A DNA stretch of 64,000 nt from Scyliorhinus canicula (taxonomy: Eukaryota), in the NCBI RefSeq assembly GCF_902713615.1, contig NC_052160.1:137434737-137498736 (forward strand), read 5' to 3'. Both the position numbers and the translations under genes were made by a program. Position 1 is the first letter of the stretch. Each line of letters opens with the position of its first letter. Below are positions 4,181 through 61,999 of the stretch, in pieces. The notes below the pieces were generated by a model, which worked only from the letters and a program-made list of their open reading frames with translations, made no database searches and was not told the DNA's origin.

Positions 4181-4492
4181 TTTCAGATGCATTGTGGGCA
4201 GAAAAGAAAGTGCGTGGAATTGTGGGAAGAGCGATCACAATAAATTGTCACTATGGTGCACGGTACAAGTCATATATTAAATATTGGTGTCACGGCACGA
4301 CTATCACGTGTAAAGTTTTAGCACAAACAAATTGGCAAAATGGAAGAATATCAATCACTGATAACAAGTCACAAACAACATTTGTTGTTACTATGGAGGA
4401 TCTTCGCCCAGCAGATGCAGGATGGTACAGCTGTGGTATTGAAACAGCTGGTCTCGATCCAATGTTTTCTGTGGAGCTTCAAACATCTTACG
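4181..4492 (+). CDS. Gene 1 Ig V-domain exon (CD300/pIgR/TREM-type)
   Basis: ctcctcag|TT TCA GAT GCA TTG TGG ... TCT TAC G|gtacat. Protein has INCHY, KYWCHG-xxxx-C (second C-C' disulfide typical of CD300/pIgR V domains) and DAGWYSCG. A second in-frame acceptor (tttcag) lies 6 nt downstream in both genes. Confidence 0.93.
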
Positions 4493-7400
4493 GTACATTT
4501 CTCAGTTTTATTTTATTACTTTCTATTGAAATGTCTGATCACTGTTCTCTCTGGGAGGAAACACGGCAGCTCCGATATCCCGGGTCTCTGCAGTGGGTGG
4601 GAGGGGAAGGTGTTGACTTGATTGGGGCCAGTGGCACGCCACAAAATGCGCAGGTAGCCAAAGGGGCTGCCAGGACAGTGACAGGCTATTTAAAAGGCCC
4701 ACCTCATGCCTTGGGACTTTGTCCCAGCAACAATCTAAGCACTAAGGACCCCCCATTCCACAGAACCATAGGATCCCTGCATTTGGCCCATCAAGTCTGC
4801 ACCGGCCCTCTGATAGATCACGCTACCTAGGACGACTCCCCCATCCTATCCCCGTAACCCCACCTGACCTGCATATCTTTGCTCACTAAAGGGCAATTTA
4901 GCGTGGCCGATTACCTAACCTGCACATCTTTGGACTGTGGGAGGAAACCGGAGCACTCGGAGGAAACCCACGCAGACACGGGGCGAAGGTGCAAACTCCA
5001 CACAGTCACCCGAGGCTGGAATTAAACTTGGGTCTTTGGTGCTAACCACTGTGCCAACGTGCCGCCCATTTTATTCGTCATCCCTCACAGTCCACAAAGG
5101 GGGTGGGTGATGGGAAGAGCTTGGCATGAGGCCGCATAAAGGGGCATAGATGGTGTGAGGGGAGGAAGGGCAGAGCTTGGCATGCGGGCATGAATGTTCG
5201 TGGGTGAGGGTAATGGGACATTGGGTTCATGACGGGATTGGGGGTGGTGCAAGACTGTGAAGGGGATGAGGAGAACCTGTTGAACTTAGTATAACTTTAA
5301 ACTTAATGAAAATCCAACTCATTATAATCAAGGGCAGACCTCCAGATCAGGATCACAACCATTGTTATTTTCATGGGGCCCTCTTGAGGATTTTCTCAAG
5401 GGTCATTTGAAGGGAACACATTTTGATTTTCAGCCGCTCTTTTTTTATTCTCATTAACGTCTTTATTAGGTGATGCTATTGTAATATTACATTCTGTATT
5501 GATGTTATTTTTTAGGGTTTCTTTCTTGCTTGTGTGTGTGTGTTCCTGTAATTAAATCTTTTGGGCGCGATTCTCCGCACTCACGACGCGTCGGAGAATA
5601 GCAGGCGGCGCAAATTTTTACGGCTACACTGGTCCGACGCCCTCCCGCTATTCTCTCCCCCCCCCCCCCCCCCACGGCCGCCCCCCAACACGAATCGCTG
5701 CTCGCCGTTTTTTTACGGCGAGCAGCGATTCTCCCCTGGCCGATGGGCCGAGTTCCCAGGCCTTTACGGCCGTTTTTACGAACTAAAAACACACCTGCTC
5801 TCACCGTTCGTAAAAACGGCCGTAAAGTGCCATTCTGGGGAACCATGGCACCGATTGGCACGGCCGTGGTGCCCGCGATCGGTGGGCACCGATCGAGGGC
5901 AGTGGGTACTTACCCCGCGCACTCTTTCTTACTCTGCCGCCCCGATGGATCCGTCCGCGGGGCTTCTGAGGGGCATAACGGCCCGCGCATGCGCGGCTGA
6001 CGTCATCATACGCGTCAGCCATCGCTAACTTTGGCGCACGGGCTATCCCCGACCGGGGAGCAGAATCGGTTCCCGGTCGGGGGCGCGGAGGCTGCCGTCA
6101 AACACGGCCGGTTTCACGGCAGCCTTCACGACTCTCCGTATTTGCGGAGAATTGCGCCCTTTGACTTTAAATCTAAAGAAAAGATGATATTACGAATTGA
6201 TTACAGATAAATCTCCCATACTCCATTTCCAAACTGAGAATTCAAATACTTGGCACATGATAACTCAATAGGTATGAGTCTCAATTGTGTTGCCCCTAGG
6301 CAGTGAGAAGGGAGGAGGTTGAAGTGCAGATGTTGTATCTCCTGATCCTGAATGGGAAGTTGCCTTCCTGTATTTTTCTGAAATTAAACGTGCTGGGCAG
6401 CGTTCTCCGTTTCAACGTTGACGCCAGGTCAGAGTCGGTGGACGTCTACAATTGGCGCCGCTCCCAGAACAATTCTGCAACAGTTAATGGACGAGCACCG
6501 ACACCACGTAGAACACCATCGATTCCAATGAGAAACGGTGTTGGATACTCCGGAGTCGGGATTGAGAGGCTGACAAGCTGCAGACACGTTTCAGCACTCC
6601 GCTCCCCACACACACTCATCCCAGCCAACAAGATGGCAGCGCAGAGAGCGGCACCCTGGTTGGCGGATGCGGAGTTGGTGGCCATACTAGATGCCGTGGA
6701 GGAGAGGCGGGTAACCCTGTACCGTAGGGTAGGAAGGAGGTTGCCAACCGCTGCCGTGCACCGGGCCTGGGTGCAGGTGGCAGGCGCTGTGGGCCCACGC
6801 CAGGGACGGACAACAGTGTCGCAAAGAGCTGCACGACTTCCTCAGGGTGGTCAGGTTCAATCGGCAGCACTGTGCCTCTGACAGTAACCCCCGTCCCACA
6901 CACCCATAACCCCCCCCCCCCCCACCCCACCCTGCACCATGTGCCAGCGCCCATACCGGCTGCCACGGCCGAGTGCCCTGGCCATGAAGGTCACCAGCTA
7001 TGCTGCATGCATCCAGCTGTCTAACACTGAGCGTTTACTCTCCCTCCCCCCACTCCAAGGAGAAGGTGGTCCACATCCGGCGGGAGAGGGAACAAACGGA
7101 GGGGGTCCGTCGAACCTGCGGCCCCCTCACCGCAGCGGAGCAGCGGGCACTGGGCTTGGTTGGTGGGCCCGCAGAGAGGGCAATCGCCAAGGCGGAGGTC
7201 ATCATTGAGCGAGTGAGTGAGACCTCGCTGAGTTGCAATTCCCCATGGCACATGTGTCACCACCCCCTCCACCACCCCCACCCTCCCCCACAGCACCACC
7301 ACACACCCCCCCCCTCCACCACCATCCCCCTAACCCCGCACCACCCCAACCCGCAGTCCAGTCATGAGTAATGTATTGTGTTTTACAAGATATCCTGGCG

Positions 7401-10400
7401 ATGAGGCAGGTCCTTCTGATGTCCCCGTGCACCGGCCCCAACCCCAACCCCAACCCCTCGTGGAAAGCAGCAAGGAAGAGGTCACAGGAGCCCTCGAACC
7501 GCAGCCCGGGACACCCCGGAACACCAGTCCTTCCTCAGGTGAATGAAGAGGTTTGTTCCAGAAACATATGTATAGACAAAGTCAAAGATGCCAGACAATG
7601 CTTAGAATGCGAGCATTTGCAGCTAATTAAGTCTTTACAGATCCAGAGAGAGGGGTAACCCCAGGTTAAAGAGGTGTGAATTGTCTCAAGCCAGGATAGT
7701 TGGTAGGATTTCACAAGCCCAGGCCAGATGGTGGGAGGGTGAATGTAATGCGACATGAATCCCAGGCCCCGGTTGAGGCCGTACTCATGTGTGCGGAACT
7801 TGGCTATAAGTTTCTGCTCGGCGATTTTGCGTTGTCGCATGTCCTGAAGGCCGCCTAGGAGAACGCTTACCCGGAGATCAGAGACTGAATGCCCTTGACT
7901 GCTGAAGTGTTCCCCGACTGGAAGGGAACATTCCTGCCTGGCGATTGTCACGCGATGTCCGTTCATTCGTTGTCGCAGCGTCTGCATGGTCTCACCAATG
8001 TACCACGCTTCGGGACATCCTTTCCTGCAGCGTATGAGGTCGACAACGTTGGCCGAGTCGCACGAGTATGTGCCGCGTACCTGGTGGGTGGTGTTCTCAC
8101 GTGTAATGGTGGTACCCATGTTGATGATCTGGCACGTCTTGCAGAGATTGCCATGGCAGGGTTGTGTGGTGTCGTGGTCGCTGTTCCCTATGGTGGCAAA
8201 GGGCAAGATTCACCAACCACAAGGGATTCCACTCATTCAATGTCTAGATCGTGTCTAACTGTGCTATACACATTACGCAGGTGTGTGCCCAATTCCCAGG
8301 GAGTATCCATGACAACTACATTTTGGGGTGCTCACAGATCCTAGGCATTTTCAAGGCAAAGCAGCGGCTGGAGGGATGGCTCCTCGGGGACAACGTGTAC
8401 CCACTCGTGAGGTGGCCTGACTCCAGTGCGTAGGCCCCACACAGCCTCTGAGACTCGCTACACTCCCACAAAGGGCACAGGGCCAGGGACACCCTCATTG
8501 GCTCTGGGTTTGGGGGCGACGGGGACCAGGATGTCAAAACCTCTCCCACCCAGGGGCTCTTCCACCTTCTCCCTGCTGCGGTGCCTGCGGGAGCTTTGAC
8601 AAAGAGTCATCCAGACTCGAAACATTAGCTCCCTTCTCTCTGCAAAGGTGCTGGCAGACCTGAAGAGATGGTCCAGTATTTTCTGTTTCTGTGGCATTTT
8701 GCCTGTGCCGGAGATCGGACCCGGAGGTGCCATGTGGGGTGTGTGGGGGGGAGCTCAAGGACCCCCTTGTAGGTGAGTTGGGGGGGGGGGGGGGGGGAAT
8801 GGGGGTCGAGAGATCGGGGCATCAATTCAAAGTGCAGTAAATGCGACTGAGTGCAGCCTCGGGTGGGGGGGGGGTCCCCAATGTGCAACCAAACAACACG
8901 TAGCTTCTCAGATTCTCACACCCAATTCAGCCACAGATAATTTAAGCTCATCGCCAACTACTTAACGAGTCATTGTTAGTCACGCTTTGCATGTTGCCAC
9001 ATCCTCGGTATTATTCTTGTTGTCCTGATCTGGAGACCTGATATAAAGGCAGACATGGCAACGCAGGCCTCCAGGAGGCTAGTCAGAAATGGGGCTGGGA
9101 TTTTAACAATTACTGTGTTGGGATCAGAAGCGGTGGGCGCACCATTTGGTGCTGCCAGTCTTCATGCCAATTCGCTATTGCAGCCCGTCTCCAACACATT
9201 TTGAGAGCGGCTGGATTGCCGTCAAGTGGTGGACAGTCAATGTGGCAAAGAAATTTACCAATGGCTTCCTACACCAAGTGGAACCATCAGTGGGAAATGC
9301 AGGTTGCCCCTTCAGGATCATGGTCAGGCGGCTGGGGGATTTTCAAGGATAAAGTAAAATAGCACGGGCTTAACCCCTCGCTGTCTCCTTATCCGGACTG
9401 GTAGCCCCCCACCTCAGCCACTGAGGCCTTGTAGCATCTGGAGCCTGCCCACAGTCCCTGACTGGATGGTGAGCCCAGTTACTTGGCCTTGAACTGGTTG
9501 AAGCATTGAAAATGGCGGTGGGTGTTCCTGAAGTTTGACGCGCAGTGTCAGGACTCAGAACTTTTCCCGATGTCCAATTCCCAAGCCCTGATTAAACATC
9601 CACCCTCCCCCCTCCCCCCCCCCCCCCCCCCCCCTCCCCCCATAGGGAGATACATGTCAGATTCCAACATGGCCAACACTGGCTGGAATGCTGAAGGGCA
9701 AAACATTAGAGAGTATTTGATTTTTAGATCCTCAAGTCAGTATCTGAATGTTTGTTTCTTTCCCACAGAATCCGTCTCTGTTCCTGTGTTGAGATTTCTA
9801 TCCCCGCCAAAAGTCTCATGTTCTGGGGGCTCAGTGTCCGTCTCCTGTGAGTCTGCCCGGGGCTCCCTCCCCATTCAGTACACATGGACTGAAAAGACCC
9901 CGTCTGAAGAATCAAAGATCTCCGACACCAATGAACTGGATCTCCGTTGTCGATCCTTCAAACAGCAACAGCAACAATATTACTGCACAGCCTCAAATAC
10001 TCGAGGGAAACAATCCAGTCAAATGGTGAATGTGACAGTCGTCAGTAAAACAGAAAAGAGCTGCAGTTACGTGATACTAAATGGAAGCAGTGGTAAGTGT
10101 TACTGTAAACGAACCATTTAGTGATTGAGTTTTTCGAAACTGGATGCGAGTTAACTTCCTTTAGTCAATCTGAGACACTGCCACTGACAAAATCCATTCT
10201 GTTTGGATCTTGAAACATTTGTGAACAGAACATTAAAAACAGAAACTGTTGGAAGAAAGGTCGCAATGTCATCATTTATATTGGCGGAGGGGCGGGTGGA
10301 GGAGGTGGGGAAGACGAGAAGGTCAGGGATAGGTCGGAGTAAAGGAGTGATTGAAAAGGACATCGTGGACATCAGACAAAGGGGGTGTTAATGGTGCCAT

Positions 10401-13400
10401 TGAGGACTGATAGCACTAATGGTGGTAAAACGTAAGGTTAGAGCAGAATGTGCTCAGAGGGGAACTTCTCATGGAAAGTGGGCAGGATAATAAAATATCC
10501 TGGGGCTGGTTTAGCACTGGGCTAAATAGCTGGCTTTTAAAGCAGAACAAGGCAGGCCAGCAGCACGGTTCAATTCCCATATTAGCCTCCCCGAACAGGC
10601 GCCGGAATGTGGCGACTAGGGGCTTTTCACAGTAACTTCATTTGAAGCCGACTTGTGACAAAAAGCGATTTTCATTTTATTTTCATTAAAAATATCCCCA
10701 AAACCTGTACACATGTTTCAGACTTTAGAAACCAACATGCCAATTCTAGCCAGGTGTGAAACGGAGTGTCATAATATACACCAATATATCATGGTGCAGA
10801 CACACACACTGATGGGCATACAGTAGGACCAATTAACATGCGTAACACCGCAGCCAATCACCAGTTAGAGCACACTCACTATAAAGTCAGAGGGCATCAG
10901 TTTTCCCGCTCATTCGGGATGCAGCCTCTCAGAAGTACAGAGCTCACAGCTTACAGCACAGATCCTCACCATATGCTGAGTGATTAGACTGGTTAGAATA
11001 GGCACAGGTCTTTAGTTAATCTAGCATCGTGTTAACCCACAGTAAGAGTATGTTCAACAGTTTATAGTTTAATAAAATAGTGTTGTACTATTTTAAGTGT
11101 TGGTGGCCTGTATGTGTTCCACGGATCCAGAGCACCCAACACATCACGGAGGGCGCAATTTAGCGGCCTCGTCACGTACGACTTGATGTTGGGACCAGGC
11201 CGCTGAATCTCGCGGGAGGTCTCTCGTGAGATTTAACGGAGTCTCGTGGGACGTTGCAACCTGGATCTCTCCCTCACTGGACGTGACGCAGGTCAGCGTA
11301 TTTAAACGAGCTATTAGTCACAATTAAATATCCGTTTGCAGGATTCTCCCGGATTCTCCCTGTGCCCTGGACCTCACGGACGTGCCTGAGAGACCTCACC
11401 AAGATGCCATTTAGTGCTGGTTTCTACAAACGTGGACCAGTCATAATGGCACCTGGGGTGGGGGGGTGGAGTGTCTCCCAGGCCATAGGAGACCCCCAAG
11501 TGGTTGGGGGCATGGAGGGTGGCGCCCTGGCACTTCCTCTGGCACCCTGGCACCTTGGCACTGCCATCCTGGACGTTGGCAGTGTCACCAGGGCTCCAGC
11601 CACCAAGAAACACCCAGCCAAACTCGTCCAAAACCGGACATAGATGTTTCTGGTTAAATCGCGCCGGGAGCGTTTAACTGTAATACCTGGTTTAGGAAAA
11701 ATGTCATGGAGTAAAGAACAAAGGGAGAAATTAGGATCATTTAATGGATGCAAATCATTATTATAATGTGGAATGCCCAAATGGAATAAGTTGAGAAACA
11801 AATTCAATAATAGCTTATCAAAGGGAAGGAAGCAAATGAATGAGTGTTTGCGGAGAGGACAATGAAAAGCAATTAACCGGGAGCTTTTTCAGTGAACCAA
11901 CATACGAGAGATGGGCCGAATCTCCTCCTTCTGTGCTATAGCATCCTATCATTACAGACAAAATTGCAAATTACCTTGTGCTGAAAATTGAATTCTCCAG
12001 GCCCCATAAAACGATGCCCCTGGTTTTGAAAGAGGGAAGACTTTAGTCAATTTGAATGTGGCAGTTCCATTTTCAGCAGCGGGGGAGAAACACGTGACCT
12101 GATGGTTGCATTGAGAAATACCAAAATGGGCAGAAAACTCAGAGGATAGCATTTCCTCTTGGAGGTTGTGAAAGCTGCCAAATCATAGATTATCATAGAA
12201 TTTACAGTGCAGAAGGAGGCCATTCGGCCCATCGAGTCTGCACCGGCTCTTGGAAAGAGCATCCTACCCAAGGTCAACACCTCCACCCCTATCCCCATAA
12301 CCCAGTAACCCCACCCAACACTAAGGGCAATTTTGGACACTAAGGGCAATTTATCATGGCCAATCCACCTAACCTGCACATCTTTGGAGTGTGGGAGGAA
12401 ACCGGAGCACCCGGAGGAAACCCACGCACACACGGGGAGGACGTGCAGACTCCGCACAGACAGTGACCCAAGCCGGGAATCGAACCTGGGACCGTGGAGC
12501 TGTGGAGCAAATCAACACAATTTATTTCACACATTATGAAGCAAGTAATTTATTGAAGTACTCTCAACCAATTGTCTTTAGTGCACACTGGAGGGTTTGG
12601 GGGTGGGGGTTGGGGGGGGGGGGGGGAGAGCGAGTGTCCCCCAACAGGAACATGGACCATTAGAATTAAATGGTCAGAACATTGCTGGTAGGTTTGAGGA
12701 ATTCATGGCCAGTGGCTAAAGATTCCCAACATTGCTGCAAGCTTAGGGAACTGAACCCAAGTGGCAGGAAATGACCGTTGCCAATATTTAGAAGCGGCAG
12801 TTCAATGCCTCCATGTGAAATTGATGACAAAAAGAGGGATATCTGGATTGTGGTCCACAATCTGAGCCCTGTAACTAGCGCAACAGTAGCTGTGGACCAC
12901 CAACTCTCAGATATAGGAAAGAAATCACCAATGGCCCACTGCCAGCGATCAGCAGCTTCTCAGTTGTTACCAGAGAGGGGGAAATTGCACAGAGATCAAT
13001 GATACCAACCAGGCTTTTCCTCAAGCACTGATGTTCCATTTCACAATGATGCTCTCTCAGTTGACCACAAGTGAAAATGAGGTGAAGCTGAATGTTATTC
13101 CCTTGTTTCAACAGGACCTGAATACTCTTGTGAAGTTTCGACAACAAAATCGCCAACATCGACACATTCCACGAGCAGAAGTTCCACGAGCAAACAAAGT
13201 GAATCTTCAGACTCCGAAAACGATGGAAGGTACGATGTTCTCATTAATGCCGTTATGAATGACACTGCTTCTATGTGAGGGGTCAAATGTCCTTTAACCA
13301 TTGGGACCATAGCAGAAAATGTTGTTCATTACTTCGGAAAGTAGCTCGCCAGAATGGAAATGGTGGCTGGGTTGACATTGTGCTGTTGGGTTCGTTTTCT

Positions 13401-16400
13401 GATGAAGGTGACATTTTTTGTTGTTGGAAAATACAAAGGGAAAATTCTCCTCTCTGGCACTAAAAACCATGGCGGAGGTGGGGAGCAGAGCTTATCCCAG
13501 TGCAGAGGGCAGTGGGAAACCAAGATGTACCTTACCTTCCCAGTGTGATTAATTATGCATCCAGGTGTTTTGCACCATCTTCCTTGGCAAGATGGGCTTG
13601 AGGGCATGTGTCCCACCATCATGCCCGGGTGTCATATTGAAAATACGGCCAACATCACTAACTTACCGCTGGATCAAGATGGTTGACCTCCTGAGGAAAG
13701 AAGGTGGACCTCCAGGGACACCCTGAGGCCTGAAGCTGGACGATTCGCCTGACAGATATTTTCCCCACGCTGTGCTGCAGTGTTCCAGACTCCAGGGTCA
13801 CTCACAGATTCCATGCCCACCTCTGAAGGCAGCCCCAGGCCTTACTCATTTCTGCTTCTGCCCCCCACGTTGGGCCAGGTGTCTTCTGGGCCAGCGTGTT
13901 TTCCCGCTGGCGTTACGAAGGATCGGGCTGGGAGGGGGAACATTCCGGTCAGGCTTTCATTTGCGGGATGCAATTCGCTTTCATCCCAGCCTCCAGCTAG
14001 ATTCCTGGGGGGGGGGGGGGGGGGCGGTCAGAGAATCCCTGGGGGGGGGGGGGCGTGAATCCCACACCGCCGCTCCGACGCCGGCTGCCCCTGGGTTTCG
14101 GGTGGGGGCGGGGATCACGCCACGCCGGTCGGGGGCCGTTGGCCCGACCCCAGAGGGGACCCCCCCCCACCGGTGGCCTGGCCCGCGATTGGGGCCCACC
14201 GATCTGCAGGTGGGCCTGTGTCGTGGAGGCACTCCCTCCTTCCGCGCCAGCCCCTGTAGGGCTCGGCCATGGCCAGTACGGAGAAGGCACCCCCCCCCTG
14301 CACATGCGCCAGAATACACCGGCCGGTCTGCACAAGTGCTGAACCACGCCGGTGGTTCTGCGCGTACGCTAACTTGTGCATTCCCTCCGGCGCCGACCTA
14401 GCCCCCGGAAGTGCGGAGAATTCTGCAGCTTCCGGTCAGCCCGACGCGGGAGTGGTTCACGCCGTTTTTTACGCCGACGTCGGGCCAACCCGCCGATTCG
14501 GGAGAATCCCGTCTCTGATCTGTCATGATGGCCGCGATCGGAGGATCCCGCTGGAAATTCACTCTGGAGTTAAAACAATTTTTATTCCTCCGACTGAATT
14601 CTCCTTCCCCGCAACCCCCCCCCATCCCAAACCTGCCATTGATTCTGCCAAGATTTTCGAATATTTTGTTTTAAAATAAATTGTTTGTTTGTTTATTTAA
14701 TTGTTGTTTGTGGAAACATGCTATTTCCAGATTCAAAGCCACGTCTGTCGCATTATGGACGTGGTTTTCCCACCCGCGTTGCACCGGGAGCATCGTAGGA
14801 AAGGTCCCTGGGTGGTCATGGACAGGGCAGGGCACTGCCAGGGTGCCTGTTGACACTGCCAAGGGGCGGGGACTGAGGGGTCCAGCCATGAAAGGGTGGG
14901 GTGAAGAGCGGGGGGGTGAAGGGAGGGGCCAGAAGGGAGGGGCCTTAAGGGTGGTGCCTTCAGCAACTCCATAGTGGCATATGCTCACTGGGGGGTGGGG
15001 GGGGGGGGGTGATCCGATGCCCACAACTATGGATTGGTGTGGGGCATGGTCAGCCTCATGCCTGGGTGGTAGGAGGGGGGGCTCACATTAATTTTATTGA
15101 TGGGGGGAGGTTGGCCCTCAGGGGTCAAGCGTTGGAGTGTTGCCCATGTCTGCGGGAGGGGGGTGTATTGTCTGTGGGTGGGAGGTGTGAGGGACCCTCA
15201 AGCCCACTTTCAGATTGGGCACCTTTTTAAACCTTTCAAAATGGCGTTGTGATCTCTGAGGAGCTGGCCTTGTTGGTGAGATTAGTTCCCCACTGCAGAA
15301 AACATTTCGAAGTGTGCGGTTATCCGGTGAGAAACTCTCCAAGCCCCAAACGTGCGGCATGGCAGCACAGTGGTTAGCACTGTTGCTTCACCGCCTCAGG
15401 GTCACAGGTTCAATCCTGGCTTGGGCCACCGCCTGTGCAGAGTCTGCACATTCTCCCCGGTGTCTGTGTGGGTTTCCTCCGGTTTCCTCCCACAAGTCCC
15501 GAAAGATGTGCTGTTAGGTAATTTGGACATTCTGAATTCTCCCTCTGTGTACCCGAACGGACGCCGGAATGTAGCGACTAGGGGCTTTTCACAGTAACTT
15601 CATTTCAGTGTGAATGTAAGCCTACTTGTGACAATAAAGATTATTAAAAAGAAATGACTTAAGTGTGGATGAATACAAGTCTGGGGGCGGATTCTCCATC
15701 CCAACAGCTCCGTATTCTGGTCGGCTCGCCCCCCACCGGCAGCGGGATTCGCCGTTCCCGCAGCCAGCCAATGGGGTTCCCCATTGTGGCCACCCCACCC
15801 GTCGGGAAACCCGCGGATATGGGTGTGCTGCCGATGAAGCGGAGGGTCCCGCTGTGGAACTTACTTAATAACTGATGGAACCATCAATTCTACGGACACG
15901 TGCTTGTAGGATTAGAATAGCGGTTTTAATATACTTACAACAGATCCAGCCTGTTAGCCGTTGAACTTTCGGTGAACTGGCTGGCTGACTCTGTGGCACG
16001 GATCTTTATACAGCAGCTCCAGGGGGAGGAGTTCTGGGCGGAGCCAAGGGGGGAGCCCAGTACAAACTCTCGAGTACTCCCAGAGCTACTCCCCCTGGTG
16101 GTCAAGTAGTGCAACTGCACTTACAATATTGATACATATATATACTTGGAACAGAGTGACATTGGTAACTTATAATACCGTGTGAATCTCATTAACCACA
16201 ATAACCAATTCGCCGTAGTGATTTTTTGGATGGATTGTGCCCGACAACAGGTATCAAAAGGATTCAATTGTCTGTAAAGAGCTTTGGGATGGTCCTAAGT
16301 TCATGAAAACCACTTTATAAATGTCTCATCTCTGGACACCCCCTTCATCTTCCTTTAATTATTTCTTTAATCTAATGGGCAAGGATCAATTGTGCACCCA

Positions 16401-35565: not shown

Positions 35566-35595
35566 GCAAGAACTGATCTGATCTCGAACAAGACC

Positions 35596-35632
35596 ATGCG
35601 GATTCTGATTCTTCTTATTTGTTCCCTGCCCG
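35596..35632 (+). CDS. Gene 2 leader (signal peptide) exon
   Basis: gaccATG CGG ATT CTG ATT CTT CTT ATT TGT TCC CTG CCC G|gtgagt. Phase 1 joins the V exon to give ..SLPVSGALWA. Confidence 0.85.
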
Positions 35633-50600: not shown

Positions 50601-53600
50601 CATTTTGGAGGGTCTAATGCAGGTAGGGAATATACAGTGAATGGTAGAACCCTCAAGAGTATTGACAGTCAGAGAGATCTTGGTGTACAGGTCCACAGGT
50701 CACTGAAAGGGGCAACACAGGTGGAGAAGGTAGTCAAGAAGGCATACGGCATGCGTGCATTTATTGGCCGGGGTATTGAGTCTAAGAATTGGCAAGTCAT
50801 GTTGCAGCTGTGTAGAACCTTAGTTAGGCCACACTTGGAGTATAGTGTTCAATTCTGGTCGCCACACTACCAGAAGGATGTGGAGGCTTTAGAGAGGGTG
50901 CAGAAGAGCTTTACCAGGATGCTGCCTGGTAGGGAGGGCATTAGCTATGAGGAGAGGTTGAATAAACTTGGTTTGTTCTCACAGCAACGAAGGAGGTTGA
51001 GGGGCGACCTGATAGAGGTCTACAAAATTATGAGGGGCATAGACAGAGAGGATAGTCAGAGGCTTTTTCCCAGGGTGGAGGAGTCAATTACTAGGAGGCA
51101 TAGGTTTAAGGTGCGAGGGGCAAGGTTTAGAGGAGATGTACGAGGCAAATGTTTTACACAGAGGGTACTGGGTGCCTGGAACGCGCTGCCAGAGGAGGTG
51201 GTGGAAGTAGGGACGATAGTGGCGTTTAAGGGGCATCTTGACAAATACATGCATAGGATGGGAATAGAGAGATACGGACCCTGGAAGTGTAGAAGATTTT
51301 AGTTTAGACGGGCAGCACGGTCTTGGAGGGCCGAAGGGCCTGTTCCTGTGCTGACTTTTCTTTGTTCTTTGTTCTCATTACTGCCATTATGAATGACACT
51401 GCTTCTATGTGAGGGGTCAAATGTTCTTTAACCATTTAGACCAAAGCAGAAAATGTTGTTCATTATTTCGGAAAGTAGCTCGCCAGAATTGAAATTCTAG
51501 CTGGGTTTATATGAAATGAAATTAAATGAAAATCGCTTATTGTCACAAGTAGGCTTCAATGAAGTTACTGTGAAAAGCCCCTAGTCGCCACATTCCGGCA
51601 CCTGTTTGGGGAGGCTGGTATAGAATTGAACCGTGCTGCTGGCCTGCCTAGGTCTGCTTTCAAAGCCAGCTAAACCAGCCCCTTATTGTGCCGTTGGATT
51701 AGCTTTTTGATAAAGGTGACATTTTTTGTTGTTGGAAAATACAAATAATGAGTGAGCATTTGTACAGTGTTGGCTCTCAGATGGTGCTTCTTGTATTGTT
51801 CATGTGGTTACTTCACTGCTAACCTATGCAGTGCGATGAGTTCTACTTCCATAGCTTAACTTGTTGGTAACGAAAACAGTGAGTGCTGGACAATGTCAGC
51901 CTCTGTGGAGGGAGAGGGGAGCGAGCGTTTTGAGTCTGCATAACTGCTTGTCAAAGAGTCGATACCTTGTCGTCATCCATGCTGACAGAGTAGTCGCTCT
52001 TCCGCTGGTGACAGGGAGATATTAGAGTGATTTGTCCACAGTCCTTGGAACCACTGGTAAATGAGAGACATCCAGCAGCGTTTTATTCCCCATATTATTG
52101 GGTCGGGTTGTCGACACTAAGCAGCAGAATTATACTTAGATGTGAACACCGAGGAATTGTGCCTGTGAAGTGACAATGGCAATACAGGGAAACCACCAAC
52201 TAAATGTCAAACAGGGACTGTTGGGAATGGATAACGGGCAAATCATCACCTGTGGTGATAATAGACAAATTTATGGTTTGGATGTGGACATTTGTTCGAA
52301 ATCTCTGTCCAATCCCGAACCTACACAGATGCATTCACCCCACACTGACCTGCTGAGTGTTTTCAGGAACCTCTGATTTTCATTCACATCTCTAGTACAT
52401 GCAGTGCACTTATTTCCAACCAGATAGAACGTAGAACAGTACAGCACAGAACAGGCCCTTCGCCCCTCTATGTTGTGCCGAGCCTTGTCCGAAATCAAGA
52501 TCAAGCTATCCCACTCCCTGCCATTCTGGAGTGCTCCATCTGCCTATCCAATAACCACTTGAAAGTTCCTAAAGTGTCCGACTCCACTATCACAGCAGGC
52601 AGTCCATTCCACACCCTAACCACTCTCTGAGTGAAGAACCTACCTCGGACATCCCTCCTATATCTCCCACCCTGAACCTTATAGTTATGCCCCCTTGTAA
52701 CAGCTGCATCCACCCGAGGAAATAGTCTCTGAACGTCCACTCTATCTATTCCCCTCATCATCTTATAAACCTCAATTAAGCCGTCTCTCATCCTCCTCCG
52801 CTTCAAACAGAAAAGCCCTAGCTCCCTCAACCTTTCCTCATAAGACCTATCCTGCAAACCAGGCAGCATCCTGGTAAATCTCCTTTGCACCCTTTCCAAT
52901 GCTTCCACATCCTTCCGATAGTGAGGTGACCAGAACTGCAGATTAACATTAATAATGTGAGAAGTATTCAAAGTGTATGGATTCCACTTTATGACATATC
53001 TCTATGTCTGTTCTGTTGTATAAATTTGACTCTGGCTATCATCTGAATGTAAAATCCATATATTGTATGAAACTGTTGTTGCATCTGTCTTTTTTAGGGG
53101 TGGCCAAATATTTTTCATTCTTTTTTTTAATTTAGTGAAATTTACTGAATTTATTGAGCAGAGCCCAGTGACAGCACACTCACCTGCTGTGTCCGAGGCT
53201 ATGGGCTCACTTCCCCTCCAGAGACTTCAGGTGCTCAGTGGCCAGCACTGACACGATGGGTCAAAGGGCCTCTTTTCCTGCTGTCTATGATGCTGTGCCT
53301 TGAGCACATTAACTCAGCTAACACTCCAGTGTGGTACTGAGGGAGTGCTTTGCTGTTAGAGTGTCCGCTCTTCAAATGTGATAAACCCAGGGCCCATCTA
53401 CTCTCTCACGTGGACGTAACAGATCATAGAATCATAGAATCCCTACAGTGCAGGAGAAAGCCATTCAGCCCATCAGGTCTGCACCGACTCACTGAAAGAG
53501 CACCCACCGAGGCCTACTCCCCCATCCTATCCCCTAATCTTCTGGACACCAAGAGGTAAATTTAGCGTGGCCAATCCGCTGAACCTGCACATCTTTGGGA

Positions 53601-56600
53601 GGAAACCGGAGCACCTATGCAGGCACTGGGAGAAGGTGCAAACTCCACACAGTCACCCAAAGGTGGAATTGAACCAGAGTCCCTGACGCTGAAGATGCTC
53701 AACAAGCCTGACAATCTCTGTGCAGAAAGGACAGAGCTAACGTTTCAAGCCGGGATGCCCCATTGCCGGAGCTTGAGGGAAACTAATTATTTGTTCACTT
53801 ATTTAATTGTAGTTCGTAGGAGCATGCAATGTGCAATTTAAATGCCACGTCTGCCACCTTACAACAGTTACTGTGTGTCAAAGGATTTAATTGTCGGTAA
53901 AGAGCTTCGGGATGTTCCGAGGTCATGAAAGCCACTTTATAAATGTCTTCCTTTAATTATTTCTTTAACCTAATGACCAAGGATCAATTGTGAACCCACA
54001 CTGACCCTTTCCTGTTCTCTGTATCACAGTCTGATTTACATTGTGCTCGGTGTGCTGGCCGCCATTCTCATCGTGTTTGTTGTTTCTCTACTTTTGTACC
54101 TGAAGATAAACAACAAGGGTGAGTTTCTATTTCTCTTCAATCATTTCATTACAGGTCCACAATTTGTCGCAGAATATAAAGAATTTCAAGTTTGTTGGAT
54201 GATTGTAGAATTCTCATTCTAGTTACGCGTATTGAAAATGGAGGCATAATCAAGTTGGGTATTGCTACCAAAAAGAGTCATGGAGCAGGATTCTCCCATC
54301 TGAGACCAAGACTCCTGGTGGGGGTGGGAGTGTTTTCTTCTGCAGAGGCTGACAGGAAACCATGCCACACCTTCCAGCCCCAAGATCGTTAATTATGCAG
54401 CCAGGGGCTTAGAATAATCTGTGGTGTGTGGGCAGGAGAGCCCCAATCCCCCATCAGATCTGAGTGCCATATTTAAATGGGTGCCCAGCATTACTGACCC
54501 GCCACGGAGGAAATAAGACGGACTTCCTGACCAAAGAGGGTAGACGTCCTGAAAAAGGTGGATCTCCGTGATCACTCGGAGGCTGGAAGATGGACCTCTC
54601 CGATGACACTGAAGATCCACCTGGTAGATACTGTGGAGTTACACACTCCGGGACTGCTGAGAATTCCATCCAAAGTTCTGGAGGCAGCCCCGGGCAACCT
54701 TCAGGTAAGTCCTGGTATCTGCGTGCCACATTGTCTCAGATATGTTCTGCACCGGCGTGTTTTGCCATTGGCGTTGTAGAGAATTGGGCATTTGAGGGGA
54801 TTTCAGTTGAGCTTTCATCTACATCCCATTAGCAAGGTACGATTCAGTTTCACATCCGCCGCCAATGCAATTCCCGAGCGGCCATGGCAGACTGCAGCTG
54901 AAGATCCCACAGGAAATTCACGCAAGTGTAAAACAGATTTTTGGGCCGGCTCTTGGAAAGAGCATCCGACCCAAGGTTAACACCTCCACCCTATCCCCAT
55001 AATCCAGTAACCCCACCCAACACTAAGGGCAATTGTGGACACTAAGGGCAATTTATCATGGCCAATCCACCTAACCTGCACATCTTTGGACTGTGGGAGG
55101 AAACCAGAGCACCCGGAGGAAACCCATGCACACACGGGGAGGATGTGCAGACTCCACACAGACAATGACCCAAGCCAGAATCGAACCTGGGACCCTGGAG
55201 CTGTGTAGCAATTGTGCTATCCACAATGCTACCGTGCTGCCCTACCAAACAACCTTTTTTTAAATTTAGAGTACCCAATTCATTTTTTTTCCAATTAAGG
55301 GGCAGTTTAGCATGGGTCAATCCACCTACATAGAACATAGAACAGTACAGCACAGAACAGGCCCTTCGGCCCTCAATGTTGTGCCGAGCCATGATCACCC
55401 TACTCAAACCCACGTATCCACCCTATACCCATAACCCAACAACCCCCCCCTTAACCTTACTTTTTTATTAGGACACTATGGGCAATTTAGCATGGCCAAT
55501 CCACCTAACCCGCACATCTTTGGACTGTGGGAGGAAACCGGAGCACCCGGACGAAACCCACGCACACAGGGGGAGGACGTGCAGACTCCACACAGACAGT
55601 GACGCAGCCGGGAATCGAACCTGGGACCCTGGGACCCTGGAGCTGTGAAGCATTTCTGCACATCTTTGGGTTGTGGGGGCTAAACCCGCACAAACATGGG
55701 GAGAATGTGCAAACTCCACACGGACAGTGACCCAGAGCCGGGATCGAACCTGGGACTTCAGCGCCGTGAGGCCGCAGTGCTAACCCACTGCGCTACCGTG
55801 CTGCCCCGTACCAAACAACTATTAATAATTAAGTTGTTACAGTTTTTGGGTAACAACAAATAAAACCTGAATTGTGTTTAGAATTAGAATGATGGCGGTG
55901 GATGGCAGAAAGTGATTCAGTCAAAATGAGACAAATCGGCTTTAGTCTTTCAACTGTAAGGCTGAAGTTTTGTGACGTGGCCATTTTAATTGGAAGTGTT
56001 GAGGATTTAATGTGCTAACCCGCTCCCATTTAGCCCGTCTGGGACAATGTGGCCTGTAGAAACCAGGACAGAAATTTCGTTTTCAACAGTATTAATTTGT
56101 AAGTCAGATAACCATTGTTGAAATGTTTACTGCTTTCTCAGGCTCTCTAGGTTCTCTCCAGAATTGAACACTGGTTCAGTTTTCCACTGAAACAGGCTCT
56201 GCTGATTTATTTGCTTTGCTGTTTCCTGAGCAAATGAATTTTCTTGCTGTAAAATATACAAGAACTGTCCCATCTCCAACTCCCACCATGGTGTCAACAG
56301 ACACTCTCGACTGAGGGCCCAATTTTAACTCAGTCTTAGTGGGATTTGAGTTGGTAAAAATTGGGTCCCTCATTTCCGTGATCAGGTGTTACTATACCTT
56401 CTAACAGTGGCACAACATAGCAGGAACTCATCTTCAGTCTTTAAGTCATTAAATCCTAAATGCACAGGGAGGTTAATGTTTACCTTCGCAACCTGGGCGT
56501 TAATTTGGCAGAGTGCTGCGTCAAAATCATTGGGATGAATATACGAGCAGCTCTGTCAGACGGTGAGAGTGAGCGTCATATGCTGGTGGTATGGTTGCTG

Positions 56601-59600
56601 CCGTCTAGTATACGTGGTATAGTGACCTATCGGGCGGGATTGTCCGACACCCCGCCAGGTGGGAGAATCGCCGGGGGTCGGCGTGAATCCCGCGCCCGCC
56701 GTCCTCCCAATACTCCCGCCCCCCCTAAAACCGGCATGGTGTGAGTCGCGCCACCTGCCTCGGAGAATGGCGGGGTCCGGCACGACTCAATGGGCCACGG
56801 GGCTGTCTGGATTCTCCGTCCTGCGATGGGCCAAAGTCCCGCCCGTTCTGTGCCAGTCCCACCGGCGTAAATTTGAGTTGGTCCCTTACCGGCGGGACCT
56901 GACAGCACGGGCGGGCTCCAGGGTTCATGGGGGGTCGCGGGGGGATCTGGCCCTGGGAGGTGCCCCCATGGTGGCCTGGCCCGTGGTCGGGGTCCACCGG
57001 CTGCGACGTGGGGGCACTCTATTCCTATGCGACGGCCGCGTAAGCCTCTGCGATGGCCTGCCCCGTAGGTGAACCCCATGTGCATGCGCGGGGATGACAT
57101 CTGCAGACGCTAACGCTCCCGCGCGTGTGCGGACCCCCACCGGTCGGCGGAGTCCCTTCGGCCCCGGCTTGTGTGGCGCGAAAGGCCTTCCACTCCGGCC
57201 GGCGGGGCGCAAACCACTCCGGGGAGGGCCTGGCCCCTGAAGGTGCGGAGGATCCCGCACCTTTGGGGCGCCACTCCGTCCCGCCGGGACCCCCCGCCCC
57301 GCCAGGTACGGGAGAATCCCGCCCATCTTATCGAGCGAGACTATTGTCTTCCTCTGGCACTTGCTTTTGTCAGAATATGGGAATAAAATGAAAATGAAAG
57401 AATTGGATGAAAGGAAAGGAAGGGCAGCACGGTAGCGTTGTGGATAGCACAATCGCTTCACAGCTCCAGGGTCCCAGGTTCGATTCCGGCTTGGGTCACT
57501 GTCTGTGCGGAGTCTGCACATCCTCCCTGTGTGTGTGTGGGTTTCCTCCGGGTGCTCCGGTTTCCTCCCACAGTCCAAAGATGTGCGGGTGAGGTGGATT
57601 GGCCATGATAAATTGCCCTTAGTATCCAAAATTGCCCGTACTGTTGGGTGGGGTTACTGGGTTATGGGGATAGGGTGGAGGTGTTGACCTTGAATAGGGG
57701 GTAGGGTGCTCTTTCCAAGAGCCGGTGCAGACTCGATGGGCCGAATGGCCTCCTTCTGCACTGTAAATTCTATGTAATCTATGTAATCTATGAAACTGAT
57801 GGGGATTCAGCTGCACTGAGGACTTTTGATATGCAGATTAGCCTAGTAGCAGGATATTTACTTAAGCAATGTGGAGAACAAGAGGGTACATAATTACAGG
57901 AGTTAAAGATAAAGAGGGTAGGAATTGAAAAGGAGAAATAAGAATGAATGTTGTACGGACATGCCAAATGCAAGACTTCTAAGACTGGTTGTTGAGATAA
58001 GACAAGATCAAAAGAGATAAACCATATATCAGTGGCAGTGTTAGTCCTATAATCTTTAATAATCTTTATTAGTGTCACAGGTAGGTTTACATTAACACTG
58101 CAATGAAGTCACTGTGAAAAGCCCTCACTCCGGTATACGGTACACAGTCTACAGTACACAGTTGCCGAACAGTTCACAAGTGACGGAGCTCACAGCCACA
58201 GCCACTAGAAGCAGAGTTCTCCCAAGAACAAGCTTTTGACCCGAGACAGCTACTTTAAACCCCAGAGGTTTTACTCTGAACAGGAAGAAAAGTTTCCCAA
58301 AGGAAAGATACAGGTCATGATTGTAACTAATGCTGCATTTGGTTACAGTGTTAAAACCAATGGGATTGTTTTGAGGAAGATATATTCTTGGAGTTTAAGA
58401 AAATAGATTTAGAACTGGAGTAATTCAAGTATACGGTGTGTAGCCATTATAGTAATTAATTGTCATTTTTTTTCTGTATTGTTACCTTTCTTGTTGGATG
58501 TTTTACAGTTTAATAAACATATTTTTATTTGCATGATTACAAGAAGACTGGATTTTTCCTCATTGGTTTTCATCTTGTTTTCCTTCAGGGATTTGGGTTA
58601 CCCTCACATTTAACACCAGTGGGGTTCTTAACATTTTTAATTGATTTATTAACACTATATGTAAGGTAGGTTACAGAGTAGGTATGTGATTTATTCACAC
58701 TATATGTAAGGTAGGTTACAGAGTAGGTATGTGTCTCCTACAGAGTGCAGAGTACAGAGTGTTCCTCCTCTCTCCTGGATTCTCCACTCCGCCCCGCCAC
58801 AATTCTGTTTCACCCTGCCAGCGGGAAGTTTCATTATGCCGGCTAGTCAATGGGGTTTCCCATTATGGGGCAGCTCCATGCTGTCGGGAAATCCCCAGGC
58901 TGCCGGCAAGATGGGGCATCCCTCTAGCGGAGAATCCAGTCCCTGATATCACAGATAAAACATGGCTTACATCACTCATTAGCATAGTTATTCGATTAAC
59001 CCACTACATTACAAACGCAAACTCTATTTGTCACTAATATAATAATCCGACCAATTTGTGATTCCATGTTGGGAATCATGGATGTGATGCAGATGAGTGT
59101 ATCTACATCAATGTAGGTCAATGGAAGATTGATCGATGGGACCTGGGTTCGATTCCTGGCTTGGGTCACTGTCTGTGCGGAGTCTACACATTCTCCACGT
59201 GTCTGCGTGGGTTTCCTCCATAAGTACCAAAAGATGTGCTTGTGAATTGGACATTCTGAATTCTCCCTCAGTGTACCCCAACAGGCGCCAGAGTGTGGCG
59301 ACTCGGGGATTTTCACAGTAACTTCAGCCTAATTGTAAGCCTACTTGTGACACTAATAAAGATAATTATTATAAGACTATTATTATATTTGAAACTCATG
59401 TTTAATTTAGAGATTTCAAACATATTAACCATTCCTGACACAGCTCTTTCAACAGTTACGTTGTCATTTTTCAGGTTCAATTGGCACCTTGTGTCATCGA
59501 AGAGACAAGACTCTTCGTGATGATCAGGTAAGGATAAATCAATTCATCCCCAAGGAAGGAATCAGGAATTCAAGAGAAACATCTTTACCCAGAGAGTGTC

Positions 59601-60758
59601 AGAATGCAAAATGTATTGCCGTGGTTGAATACGTGTCATACATAGGGGCTGGTTTAGCACAGGGCTAAACCGCTGGCTTTTAAAGCAGACCAAGGCAGGC
59701 CAGCAGCACAGTTCAATTCCCTTACCAGCCATCCCCGAACAGGCGCCGGAATGTGGTGACTAGGGGCTTTTCACAGTAACTTCATTTGAAGCCTGCTTGT
59801 GACAATAAGTGATTTTCATTTCATTACGTGCATTCAATGGAAGTTGGATAAGCAGTTGAAGGAGAAAGAAATAGAAAGATATGTGGAAGAGGGGTAGAAT
59901 CAGCAAGAAAAGGAGAACAACAAGAAAAAGACGTTTTCAGATTAATTTTTTTAAAATTTACTCATGTGATGTGGGCCTCACTGGCCCAGAATTTATTGCC
60001 CATCCCTAATTTCCCTCAACTGAGTGATTCATGAGCCATTTCAGAGGCAACCACATTGGTGTAGTCCTTGAGCCCCATATAGGCCAGGCCAGGTTGGGGC
60101 AGCAGATTTCCCCTCCCAAAAGGAAATTAGCGAACCAGATGCACTTTTCTTTTAAATGAAAATTGGTTCATGGTCATCATTAGAATTTTAATTCCAGATT
60201 TTTTATTGAATTCAAATTTCACCATCTGCTGTTGTGAGATTTGAACCCAGGTCCATAGCATTACCCTGGGCCGCTGGATTACCAGGCGAGTGACAATCCC
60301 ACTATGCCACTGCCTCCACTGCGTCTGTGCTGTAAATATATTTAAAATAATTTGCCATGCTTTATAAACTGATCTGTAATCGTTGATAAGTAGCTTTCTC
60401 CTCATATCTGCGCAAAGCACCATTCAGGTTAATCATAAATGCAATCTTTTTGTTATTTTAGCAATTGGCAGCAGAGGAAGAGAACATTGTGTATGCAGAT
60501 GTAAACCGCCTTAACAGGAACTCAGCGAGAACACAGAGAGAGGGAACTGTCCAGCTGACTAATGATGAAATCACATATGCAGCAGTGCAGTTTCAGAAGA
60601 AATCGTCCAGAAGGAGCAATGAAATGTCCAGACATTCAGCTTACAACATGGACGGTGCTATCTACAGTAACATCACCATACAGAGCCAACCACCAAAGGA
60701 AAATCCAAAATCTCCGCAGGAATCCGAAATGTCAACTTACGCAAACGGTACTTATTAG
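35596..60758 (+). CDS. Gene 2 (complete, 408 aa, spliced): paralogous inhibitory CD300/pIgR-like V + FCRL-like C2 receptor (MDIR-like)
   Basis: Exons of 37+312+324+115+89+53+297 = 1227 nt give 408 aa plus stop. All introns GT-AG. Signal peptide MRILILLICSLPVSGA. Confidence 0.92.
38688..38999 (+). CDS. Gene 2 Ig V-domain exon
   Basis: ctcctcag|TT TCA GGT GCA ... TCC GAA G|gtacct; motifs IDCHY, KYWCHGWSRQC, DTGWYSCG. Confidence 0.93.
40188..40820. mobile_element. Harbinger-type MITE, right end missing
   Basis: Left TIR gggcgcgattctc; internal homology to the other MITEs. Confidence 0.65.
40962..41671. mobile_element. Harbinger-type MITE
   Basis: gggcgggattct ... agaatttcgccc; TSD CTG. Confidence 0.82.
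42632..43014 (+). mobile_element. Solo LTR, family A, second copy
   Basis: Same start tgtcataatatacacc; ends aaacttca; TSD TGACC/TGACA (1 mismatch). Confidence 0.85.
45152..45827. mobile_element. Harbinger-type MITE
   Basis: gggcgtgattctcc ... ggagaatcgcgccc; TSD AAC. Confidence 0.82.
45863..45983. repeat. Local tandem duplications (11 bp x2 and 50 bp x2, period 53)
   Basis: ctggtcaacaa at 45863 and 45874; acaatgtgggcagg...gcagctg at 45881-45930 and 45934-45983. Confidence 0.9.
46147..46470 (+). CDS. Gene 2 Ig C2-type exon
   Basis: cccacag|AA TCC ... AGC ATT G|gtaagt; 95/108 aa identical to the gene 1 C2 exon (hand count). Confidence 0.92.
46620..46905 (+). mobile_element. Old tRNA-derived SINE (unnamed here); inverted copy at ~59960-60330
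   Basis: gggttcaaatcccacc B box; ctaatgtccttcagggaagg..tgtgactccagacccacagc core in both copies. Confidence 0.6.
47058..47699. mobile_element. Harbinger-type MITE
   Basis: ggccgagattctcc ... ggagaatcctgccc; TSD CTG. Confidence 0.8.
48850..49200 (-). mobile_element. Decayed APE-endonuclease fragment of a CR1/L2-type LINE
   Basis: Minus translation HVPRKIQRG*SPLYLR..FE..LNLLLI.RNPP resembles H.PR..RGGGVALY..FE..L.L..IYRPP. Confidence 0.45.
50209..50323 (+). CDS. Gene 2 stalk exon
   Basis: ttcaacag|GA CCT AAA TAT TCT TGT ... GCT GAA AG|gtacaa encodes GPKYSCEVSSTESPASTHSMSRSSTSKQSESSDSKNAE. Confidence 0.88.
50336..51375 (+). mobile_element. 5'-truncated CR1 LINE with an uninterrupted RT C-terminal frame, inserted 12 bp into the gene 2 stalk-TM intron
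   Basis: SGVPQGSVLGPLLF.LYINDL..VADDTK..MEFNPDKCEVMH..RPHLEYSVQFWSP; (tgttctt)n tail; the empty site is visible in gene 1 (gtacgatgttct|cattaatgcc). Confidence 0.92.
52422..52940 (-). mobile_element. CR1 LINE 3' fragment
   Basis: ORF 52501..52971: QFWSPHYRKDVEALERVQRRFTRMLPG..FFTQRVV; (tagaa)n-type tail. Confidence 0.88.
54030..54118 (+). CDS. Gene 2 transmembrane exon (uncharged)
   Basis: tatcacag|T CTG ATT TAC ... AAG G|gtgagt encodes LIYIVLGVLAAILIVFVVSLLLYLKINNK. Confidence 0.92.
54945..55810 (-). mobile_element. Stack of three type-A SINEs, one nested inside another
   Basis: The SINE at ~55330-55650 splits another at ccaccta|..ctgcacatc. Confidence 0.75.
56632..57324. mobile_element. 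Harbinger-type MITE
   Basis: gggcgggattgtcc ... ggagaatcccgccc; TSD ATC. Confidence 0.82.
58642..58733. repeat. 45-bp tandem duplication
   Basis: tgatttatt(a/c)acactatatgtaaggtaggttacagagtaggtatgtg occurs twice. Confidence 0.9.
59475..59527 (+). CDS. Gene 2 short cytoplasmic exon
   Basis: tttttcag|GT TCA ATT ... GAT CAG|gtaagg encodes GSIGTLCHRRDKTLRDDQ. Confidence 0.87.
60462..60758 (+). CDS. Gene 2 terminal cytoplasmic exon (three ITIM-like motifs, fourth degenerate)
   Basis: ttttag|CAA TTG GCA; motifs IVYADV, ITYAAV, AIYSNI, then STYANG; stop TAG. Confidence 0.92.
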   Translation, partial: QLAAEEENIVYADVNRLNRNSARTQREGTVQLTNDEITYAAVQFQKKSSRRSNEMSRHSAYNMDGAIYSNITIQSQPPKENPKSPQESEMSTYANGTY

Positions 60759-61980: not shown

Positions 61981-61999
61981 ATTTGAGACCAGGAAGACA

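Follow-up and report, generated by a model that had tools for sequence, protein, structure and literature searches.

What kind of immune receptor do two adjacent, unnamed loci of the catshark Scyliorhinus canicula encode? The stretch analyzed here (the window) comprises 64,000 nt of the catshark genome (contig NC_052160.1, positions 137,434,737 to 137,498,736 of the forward strand). It carries two tandem paralogous exon sets on the + strand, gene 1 and gene 2, each with exons for an immunoglobulin (Ig) V domain, an Ig C2 domain, a stalk, a transmembrane segment, a short cytoplasmic piece and a tail. A model that read the sequence alone (the sequence-only reading) had described the pair as chimeric receptors joining a CD300/pIgR-type V domain to an FCRL-type C2 domain in one molecule that bears immunoreceptor tyrosine-based inhibitory motifs (ITIMs). 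We conclude, at a probability of roughly 0.87, that the two genes are catshark tandem MDIR2-type members of the modular domain immune-type receptor (MDIR) family of cartilaginous fish. The pair is not a new chimera; the V-C2 design is the ordinary MDIR architecture, published for skate in 2006.

Homology of both genes to skate MDIR2

The MDIR family was published in 2006 (Cannon et al., Immunogenetics 58:362, cited in PMC3031540), and its named members come from Rostroraja (Raja) eglanteria, the clearnose skate. Skate MDIR2 (P0036, 416 aa) aligned with both catshark proteins at 44–45% identity over 404–411 residues (E 1e-108 to 1e-114). The alignment was collinear from the leader to the C-terminus, and the motifs I[TM]YAAVQF and xIYASV were conserved. 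The sequence-only reading had partly suspected this kinship, stating that skate MDIRs pair a CD300-like V with C2 domains. Other strong matches were the clearnose skate proteins named MDIR3 (P0086) and MDIR5 (P0015) in UniRef.

MDIR2 and the catshark proteins share the leader, the CD300/pIgR-like V, the FCRL-like C2, a CSxV...YSC stalk, an uncharged transmembrane segment ending in LLLYLR, and an ITIM tail with I[TM]YAAVQF and the C-terminal xIYASV. Each belongs to a multigene family whose members range from two to six Ig domains and include ITIM-bearing and charged-transmembrane forms. They differ in lineage, shark versus skate, and the likeness, established by alignment, may reflect strict orthology or a lineage-specific expansion. 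Furthermore, close to the membrane both catshark proteins have one more ITIM (IVYANI/IVYADV), which is absent from skates.

What marks an MDIR is present in the pair: full-length homology, modules of the CD300/pIgR/TREM and FcR kinds, and MDIR2/3-type ITIMs together with an uncharged transmembrane segment. The abstract of the original skate description is said to name FcR homologs too and to place ITIMs in MDIR2 and MDIR3. The multigene character is also evident, as the two window genes, the first V-C2 pair of the RefSeq protein P0071 (described below) and the proteins P0073 and P0104 belong to the same 147-Mb chromosome record. At least 15 genomes of sharks, rays and chimaera have annotated V-C2 or V-C2-V-C2 relatives, under inconsistent automatic names (pIgR-like, Fc receptor-like 5/6, CMRF35-like, CXADR-like, A33-like). 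The nearest bony-fish match, sturgeon P0114, has three V domains and no C2. With these relatives, and with the V-C2 joint seen in gene 1 RNA, the proposal of a cartilaginous-fish multigene family that puts both domain types in one ITIM-bearing molecule stands.

Exon structure and transcripts

The exon sets were obtained by comparing the window with itself, by translation and by reading splice sites (Table 1). In the self-comparison, conserved + strand blocks at 4–20 kb were collinear with those at 38–61 kb, and unrelated repeats lay between the blocks. The V, C2, stalk, transmembrane, cytoplasmic and tail exons measured 312, 324, 115, 89, 53 and 297 nt, respectively, in gene 1 and gene 2 alike. 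The phases also agreed, with phase 1 at the end of the leader, V, C2 and transmembrane exons, phase 2 after the stalk exon and phase 0 after the cytoplasmic exon. All acceptors were AG and all donors GT in both genes. Paired paralogs of equal exon lengths and phases had been proposed, and both exon sets lay at the coordinates proposed for them. Most exons were indeed hidden in the list of open reading frames (ORFs); just the V, C2 and tail exons sit in long ones.

The spliced gene 2 model was 1227 nt long, encoding 408 aa and a stop, which reproduces the 408-aa model of the sequence-only reading. RefSeq lists both loci as "uncharacterized protein": LOC119978459 (P0021, 408 aa) for gene 1 and LOC119978458 (P0071, 620 aa), which takes in the gene 2 exons. 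The annotation status, which had been left open, is settled by these entries. The description of two paralogs with six to seven exons was confirmed with one correction: the leader exon of gene 2 lies in the window and that of gene 1 upstream of it.

All 395 residues that the window contributes to the gene 1 model were identical to P0021 (100%). Searches of positions 1–4180 by blastn, tblastn and motif scan found no gene 1 leader exon there; since the annotated gene spans 28,766 nt in GCA_902713615.2, the leader is placed ~8.7 kb before the window start.

Is gene 1 transcribed with these junctions? Contigs assembled from four S. canicula RNA runs were placed on window positions 4150–10100. The key V-to-C2 joint, 4491/2 to 9768/9 with GT..AG ends, appeared in run X1 (a 296-nt contig, depth 85.6, 30-nt side). 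Contig pieces began at 4180/1 and at 9767/8 (X1, X2 and X5 in each case) and stopped at 4491 (X1) and at 10093 (all four runs). RNA cover of the V-C2 intron was confined to repeat elements, and 50–81% of the sampled words of the gene 1 C2 exon were found in the runs. The RNA check proposed earlier thereby came out in favor of the predicted joint, in one contig of one run, with matching edges elsewhere. Because P0021 matches residue for residue and both the exon edges and the V-C2 joint recur in the RNA contigs, chance is ruled out for the gene models.

Two other splice sites were considered and rejected. These were an acceptor at 4187 for the gene 1 V exon and an early C2 donor (GTCA|GTAAAA). 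Both were discarded because a leader with a phase 1 end and a final G yields V-S-G/D, the form seen in homologs; the homologs, the ends of the RNA contigs and P0021 likewise back 4181 and 10092.

V and C2 domains

The gene 1 V exon matched Pfam V-set (6.6e-11) and, among PDB sequences, CLM-1 (phmmer, 3e-21). When a profile of 67 V sequences of the family was searched against all solved structures, CLM-1/CD300f was the best match (7e-29), followed by CD300a (9e-24). The first domain (D1) of pIgR scored 1e-16 to 3e-18, and NKp44 (1e-14), TREM2 (6e-12) and Fc-mu-R (6e-11) came further down. Whole pIgR chains outscore these because their several domains sum. The AlphaFold model of the V domain had a mean predicted local distance difference test score (pLDDT) of 95.9. 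Its top 13 Swiss-Prot fold matches were all CD300 proteins, the best being mouse CLM-1 (41% identity, TM-score 0.93), and FCAMR and pIgR came next. The extra cysteine pair, KYWC-x6-C, is present, and its conservation across the family is 90% or more. These results agree with the proposed CD300/pIgR type of the V domain.

The V domain thus meets its closest sequence and fold counterparts in mammalian CD300f and CD300a, with which it shares the extra C-C' disulfide. The CD300 family, for which lipid ligands are known, also shares the logic of paired inhibitory (ITIM) and activating (charged-transmembrane) members. On the other hand, a CD300 protein has a single V on a mucin-like stalk and no C2, whereas in the catshark protein a C2 follows the V in the same transcript, though the V itself qualifies as CD300-type.

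The C2 exon matched Pfam Ig_3/Ig_2, with FCRL5 as the top PDB match. A C2 profile of 55 sequences, compared with the single domains D4–D9 of FCRL5, gave 25–44 bits (best 1.8e-10), and FCRL4 gave 2e-9; both were ahead of CD22 d6-7 (3.6e-6), VSIG4 and CAR. The C2 shares with FCRL5 D4–D9 and FCRL4 the PVSxPVL start, CE..GS.PI.Y in the B-C region and YYC.A.N..G in the F-G region, and FCRL4 and FCRL5 are ITIM-tailed like the catshark proteins. The ectodomains differ: that of FCRL, as of the classical FcR, consists of FcR-type C2 domains alone, whereas the N-terminal domain of the catshark proteins is a CD300-type V. The C2 model (pLDDT 85.7) retrieved FCRL5, FCRL1 and FCRL6 in Foldseek among VSIG, CD22, SLAM and FcγRI, all at E ~1e-3. 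A feature search of the ESM Atlas returned generic Ig clusters alone (scores 0.86–0.88). The proposed FCRL-like character of the C2 can therefore be kept as a likeness of sequence, where the profile puts FCRL5 and FCRL4 first, and not of fold, which is generic.

Do the receptors bind immunoglobulin?

Could the proteins serve sharks as true Fc or polymeric-Ig receptors, with IgM, IgW or IgNAR as ligands, and not as CD300-like sensors of lipids or other ligands? The V domain lies in the clade of pIgR D1, Fc-alpha/mu-R and Fc-mu-R, it is homologous to pIgR domains, and many family members have been auto-named "polymeric immunoglobulin receptor-like" by NCBI. The C2 is most like FCRL5 and FCRL4, which bind IgG and IgA. 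In addition, a survey of shark genomes reported no PIGR or FcRL homologs (PMC4016189), so that the niche of an Fc or polymeric-Ig receptor would be unfilled in sharks.

Against an Ig receptor, the V profile gave 103 bits for CD300f and 87 bits for CD300a versus 64–69 bits for pIgR D1 and 46 bits for Fc-mu-R. A transport receptor is also laid out differently: in pIgR, two to five V-type domains go with a transcytosis tail and no C2, whereas each catshark protein has one V, one C2 and an ITIM tail. Finally, the genes belong to a large, fast-diversifying paired family whose V loops vary among paralogs, which is typical of CD300-, LILR- and KIR-like receptors. We consider it improbable that these proteins are true Fc or polymeric-Ig receptors.

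A related idea, that MDIR2-type receptors are the Ig-binding inhibitory receptors of cartilaginous fish and the functional counterpart of Fc-gamma-RIIB/FCRL, is likewise a long shot. If it were true, Fc-receptor function would be older than the divergence of cartilaginous from bony fish, at odds with the survey. The negative result of PMC4016189 should better be read as "no orthologs", as the V and C2 domain lineages are clearly present in sharks. In a lineage that has no established Fc or polymeric-Ig receptor, MDIR2-type genes are reasonable candidates for Ig or lipid binding, a candidacy that dates from the 2006 skate work.

Gene 2: one receptor or part of a larger one?

Is gene 2 a receptor gene of its own? 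Its leader exon encodes MRILILLICSLP and then the G of a split codon, and it ends at a GTGAGT donor. The NKT-M context conserved in the family stands upstream of the leader ATG, and the leader matched that of S. torazame at 12 of 12 residues (tblastn). It is the sole motif of its kind in the window and lies ~3 kb upstream of the V exon, the same layout as in other family genes. Of the sampled words of the gene 2 V exon, 64–88% were found in the S. canicula RNA runs. Judged by its leader and layout, gene 2 is more likely than not an independent two-Ig gene of 408 aa.

The RefSeq model of LOC119978458 suggests a different gene, in which the gene 2 exons are the 3' part of a four-Ig (V-C2-V-C2) receptor, either alone or alongside the two-Ig form. 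The leader, first V and first C2 of this receptor would lie upstream of gene 1, and gene 1 would sit inside a very long intron. P0071 is composed accordingly: it opens with a leader, a V and a C2 from outside the window, skips the local leader at 35596–35632, and continues with the V-to-tail exons of gene 2 at 100% identity, residues 225–617 of P0071 being identical to residues 13–405 of gene 2. Its first V and first C2 are 94% and 85% identical to those of gene 2. The annotated range of LOC119978458 covers the whole gene 1 locus and 10 kb on each side, and splicing 60747 to 62038, from an internal donor in the tail exon, reproduces the D-A-L-stop C-terminus of P0071. The family does contain four-Ig members, namely skate MDIR5, which has a database entry under that name, and P0073 of S. 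canicula. Because all Ig exons are phase 1-1, the two-Ig and the four-Ig form both stay in frame.

Several observations speak against the four-Ig form. The gene 2 leader is intact, 3 kb before its V, in the NKT-M context and with a consensus donor; it would be unusual for a complete paralog to sit within an intron of over 57 kb; automatic models of this family fuse neighbors, as in Hemiscyllium P0078, P0080 and P0083; and V exons that are 94% identical invite mis-assignment of short reads. We regard the four-Ig form as a real possibility, though one below an even chance, and retain the two-Ig gene as the preferred model of gene 2.

The Hemiscyllium models are instructive in their own right. 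In each of the three RefSeq "pIgR-like" proteins of Hemiscyllium ocellatum, two neighboring genes of the family are fused by read-through, and an internal 5' untranslated region and leader (..NKTMWTLILLICSIP..) comes after a complete transmembrane segment and tail. Automatic annotation of the MDIR-type family is unreliable.

Might gene 2 instead be a decaying copy on its way to a pseudogene? Its last conserved ITIM is gone, STYASV having become STYANG, a change that also makes the GT donor used by RefSeq. A fragment of a long interspersed nuclear element (LINE), lacking from gene 1, begins 12 nt after the stalk donor, whose GT is intact. Set against these signs are an open frame across all seven exons with canonical splice sites, an overall ratio of nonsynonymous to synonymous divergence (dN/dS) below 1 (0.67), the presence of the gene 2 V exon in the RNA runs, and the retention of two canonical ITIMs. 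Decay is therefore very unlikely, and we continue to treat gene 2 as an intact receptor gene.

The end of the gene 2 tail shows a substitution cluster at 60745–60750 (20088–20093 in gene 1), which accounts for both the altered motif and the new donor. A single change there may have removed a signaling motif and made a new 3' end.

Divergence of the two copies

How did two genes of identical layout come to differ so unevenly? By the Nei-Gojobori method, the V exons of gene 1 and gene 2 had a dS of 0.43 and a dN of 0.23 (ratio 0.55), whereas the other five exons jointly had a dS of 0.09 and a dN of 0.07. The intron flanking the V exon was as diverged as the exon itself, save for the 60 nt before the acceptor. 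The gene 2 V is 64% identical to the gene 1 V, versus the 94% shared with the upstream V of P0071, and the C2 domains of the two genes are 89% identical. By these comparisons the copies are mosaics, with a V exon and flanks that appear old and a C2-to-tail part that appears young or homogenised. Gene conversion, or an exchange of exons among the genes of a cluster, would fit this pattern. We also considered positive selection acting on the V exon and rejected it, as the dN/dS of this exon is 0.55, its dS is raised too and the flanking intron is equally diverged.

Predicted signaling

The membrane segment (LIYIVLGVLGAILIVFVVSLLLYL) contains no charged residue in either gene. A motif scan of the gene 1 tail found the canonical ITIMs IVYANI, ITYAAV and STYASV and the ITIM-like AIYSNI; the gene 2 tail has IVYADV and ITYAAV, plus AIYSNI, and the degraded STYANG in last position. 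In the alignment, sharks and skates alike conserve ITYAAVQF and, at the C-terminus, YA[ST]V. The description of both genes as inhibitory in type is consistent with these uncharged membrane segments and with three (gene 1) and two (gene 2) canonical ITIMs.

Each protein would be a membrane glycoprotein of type I, composed of a leader, a V that has the additional C-C' disulfide, a C2, a cysteine-bearing, Ser/Thr-rich stalk, the uncharged transmembrane segment and a tail of ~115 residues with two or three canonical ITIMs. By analogy with the ITIM receptors CD300a/f, FCRL and Fc-gamma-RIIB, binding of a ligand by the V domain would lead Src-family kinases to phosphorylate the ITIM tyrosines. The phosphorylated ITIMs would recruit SHP-1, SHP-2 or SHIP, and these phosphatases could damp signaling by receptors coupled to immunoreceptor tyrosine-based activation motifs on the same leukocyte.

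Likely partners are V-C2 family members that combine a transmembrane arginine with a short tail, as activating receptors coupled to an adaptor usually do. One such relative, S. canicula P0104, is encoded on the same chromosome record and has the same V-C2 ectodomain, a conserved VIRW arginine in its transmembrane segment and a tail of ~20 residues. The suggestion that activating partners may lie outside the window thus has a candidate, of activating type by its sequence.

Repeats and other features of the window

A repeat of ~170–190 bp occurs in ~10 copies in both orientations, at 84–92% identity. ARAGORN calls three copies tRNA-like (Met, Leu, Phe), and an Rfam scan of the window gave nothing at the gathering threshold, including tRNA for this repeat. 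It is probably a tRNA-derived short interspersed nuclear element (SINE), the ARAGORN matches being the SINE heads. A second high-copy repeat carries the ORF motif QLQGPRFDSRLGHCLCGV...SPKMCGLGGLAMLNCP; its summed RNA contig depth was 26,000–209,000 versus ~100 for the receptor exons.

A tandem array at 18647–19224 (periods ~30, 60 and 98 nt) lies in the last intron of gene 1 and yields a spurious 227-aa ORF of HRDPCNR-like repeats. Remnants of retrotransposons without long terminal repeats (non-LTR) lie on the − strand at 29541–33181, between the genes, and at 52501–52971, in a gene 2 intron; one remnant ORF matched Pfam RVT_1 (2.4e-07), and neighboring ORFs were without a Pfam match. GC-rich repeat blocks at 13772–14401, 40132–41854, 47117–47868 and 56627–57629 contain long overlapping, Pro/Gly/Arg-rich ORFs on both strands. 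Many of the large ORFs listed for the window arise from these blocks and are not receptor genes.

Table 1. Positions of receptor exons and other features in the window
Feature	Position	Strand	Basis
Gene 1 V exon, CD300/pIgR type	4181-4492	+	Pfam V-set, phmmer, RNA edges, P0021; phase 1 in and out
Gene 1 C2 exon, FCRL-like, including membrane-proximal CSYV cysteine	9769-10092	+	Pfam Ig_3/Ig_2, FCRL5, RNA
Gene 1 stalk exon, Ser/Thr-rich (PEYSCEV...), ends in phase 2	13115-13229	+	tblastn with shark homologs, splice sites, P0021
Gene 1 transmembrane exon, uncharged	16432-16520	+	Translation, splice sites, P0021
Gene 1 short cytoplasmic exon	16998-17050	+	Conservation in gene 2, splice sites (AG/GT), phases in frame, P0021
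Gene 1 tail exon, stop 20099-20101	19805-20101	+	Motif scan, alignment with MDIR2 and shark orthologs
Gene 2 leader exon	35596-35632	+	tblastn to S. torazame leader, DNA
Gene 2 V exon	38688-38999	+	Pfam V-set 7.4e-09; equals P0071 residues 225-328 at 100%
Gene 2 C2 exon	46147-46470	+	Pfam Ig_3; 100% identical to second C2 of P0071
Gene 2 stalk exon	50209-50323	+	tblastn with shark homologs, splice sites
Gene 2 transmembrane exon, uncharged	54030-54118	+	Translation, splice sites
Gene 2 short cytoplasmic exon	59475-59527	+	Conserved with gene 1, splice sites
Gene 2 tail exon, stop 60756-60758	60462-60758	+	Motif scan
Alternative last coding piece (D-A-L-stop) of the LOC119978458 model, inside a repeat-derived ORF	62038-62048	+	
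LINE reverse-transcriptase fragment in gene 2 intron	50336-51369	+	blastn breakpoints, DNA, Pfam RVT_1 3e-12
Copies of ~170-190 bp repeat	3897-4069, 10502-10687, 27141-27320, 37523-37685, 43500-43671, 44676-44846, 51525-51645, 59642-59825, 63093-63280		
Second repeat	4747-5144; copies ~12243-12510, 25379-25588, 26620-26965, 36310-36646, 43079-43425, 54946-55241, 55417-55632, 57423-57783		

Discussion

How firmly do these results place the catshark pair among the MDIRs? Some of them weigh against our reading of the two genes as MDIR2-type inhibitory receptors. The V-C2 joint of gene 1 was seen in one contig of one run, with a 30-nt side, and elsewhere the RNA gave exon-edge ends alone. Foldseek did not single out FCRL for the C2, whose fold is that of a generic C2. 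The two-Ig model of gene 2, with its local leader and unspliced C-terminus, differs from the RefSeq model, and its 5' and 3' joints are predicted. Lastly, the inhibitory function of both genes is inferred from motifs. The collinear match to MDIR2 from leader to C-terminus nevertheless leads us to retain this reading.

As the V-C2 design is found in sharks, rays and chimaera, the CD300/pIgR-type V and the FCRL-type C2 both predate the split from bony fish, and published claims that PIGR and FcRL relatives are lacking in sharks need to be qualified. For the two RefSeq loci, the label "uncharacterized" can now give way to a name, that of inhibitory receptors of MDIR2 type in the catshark.

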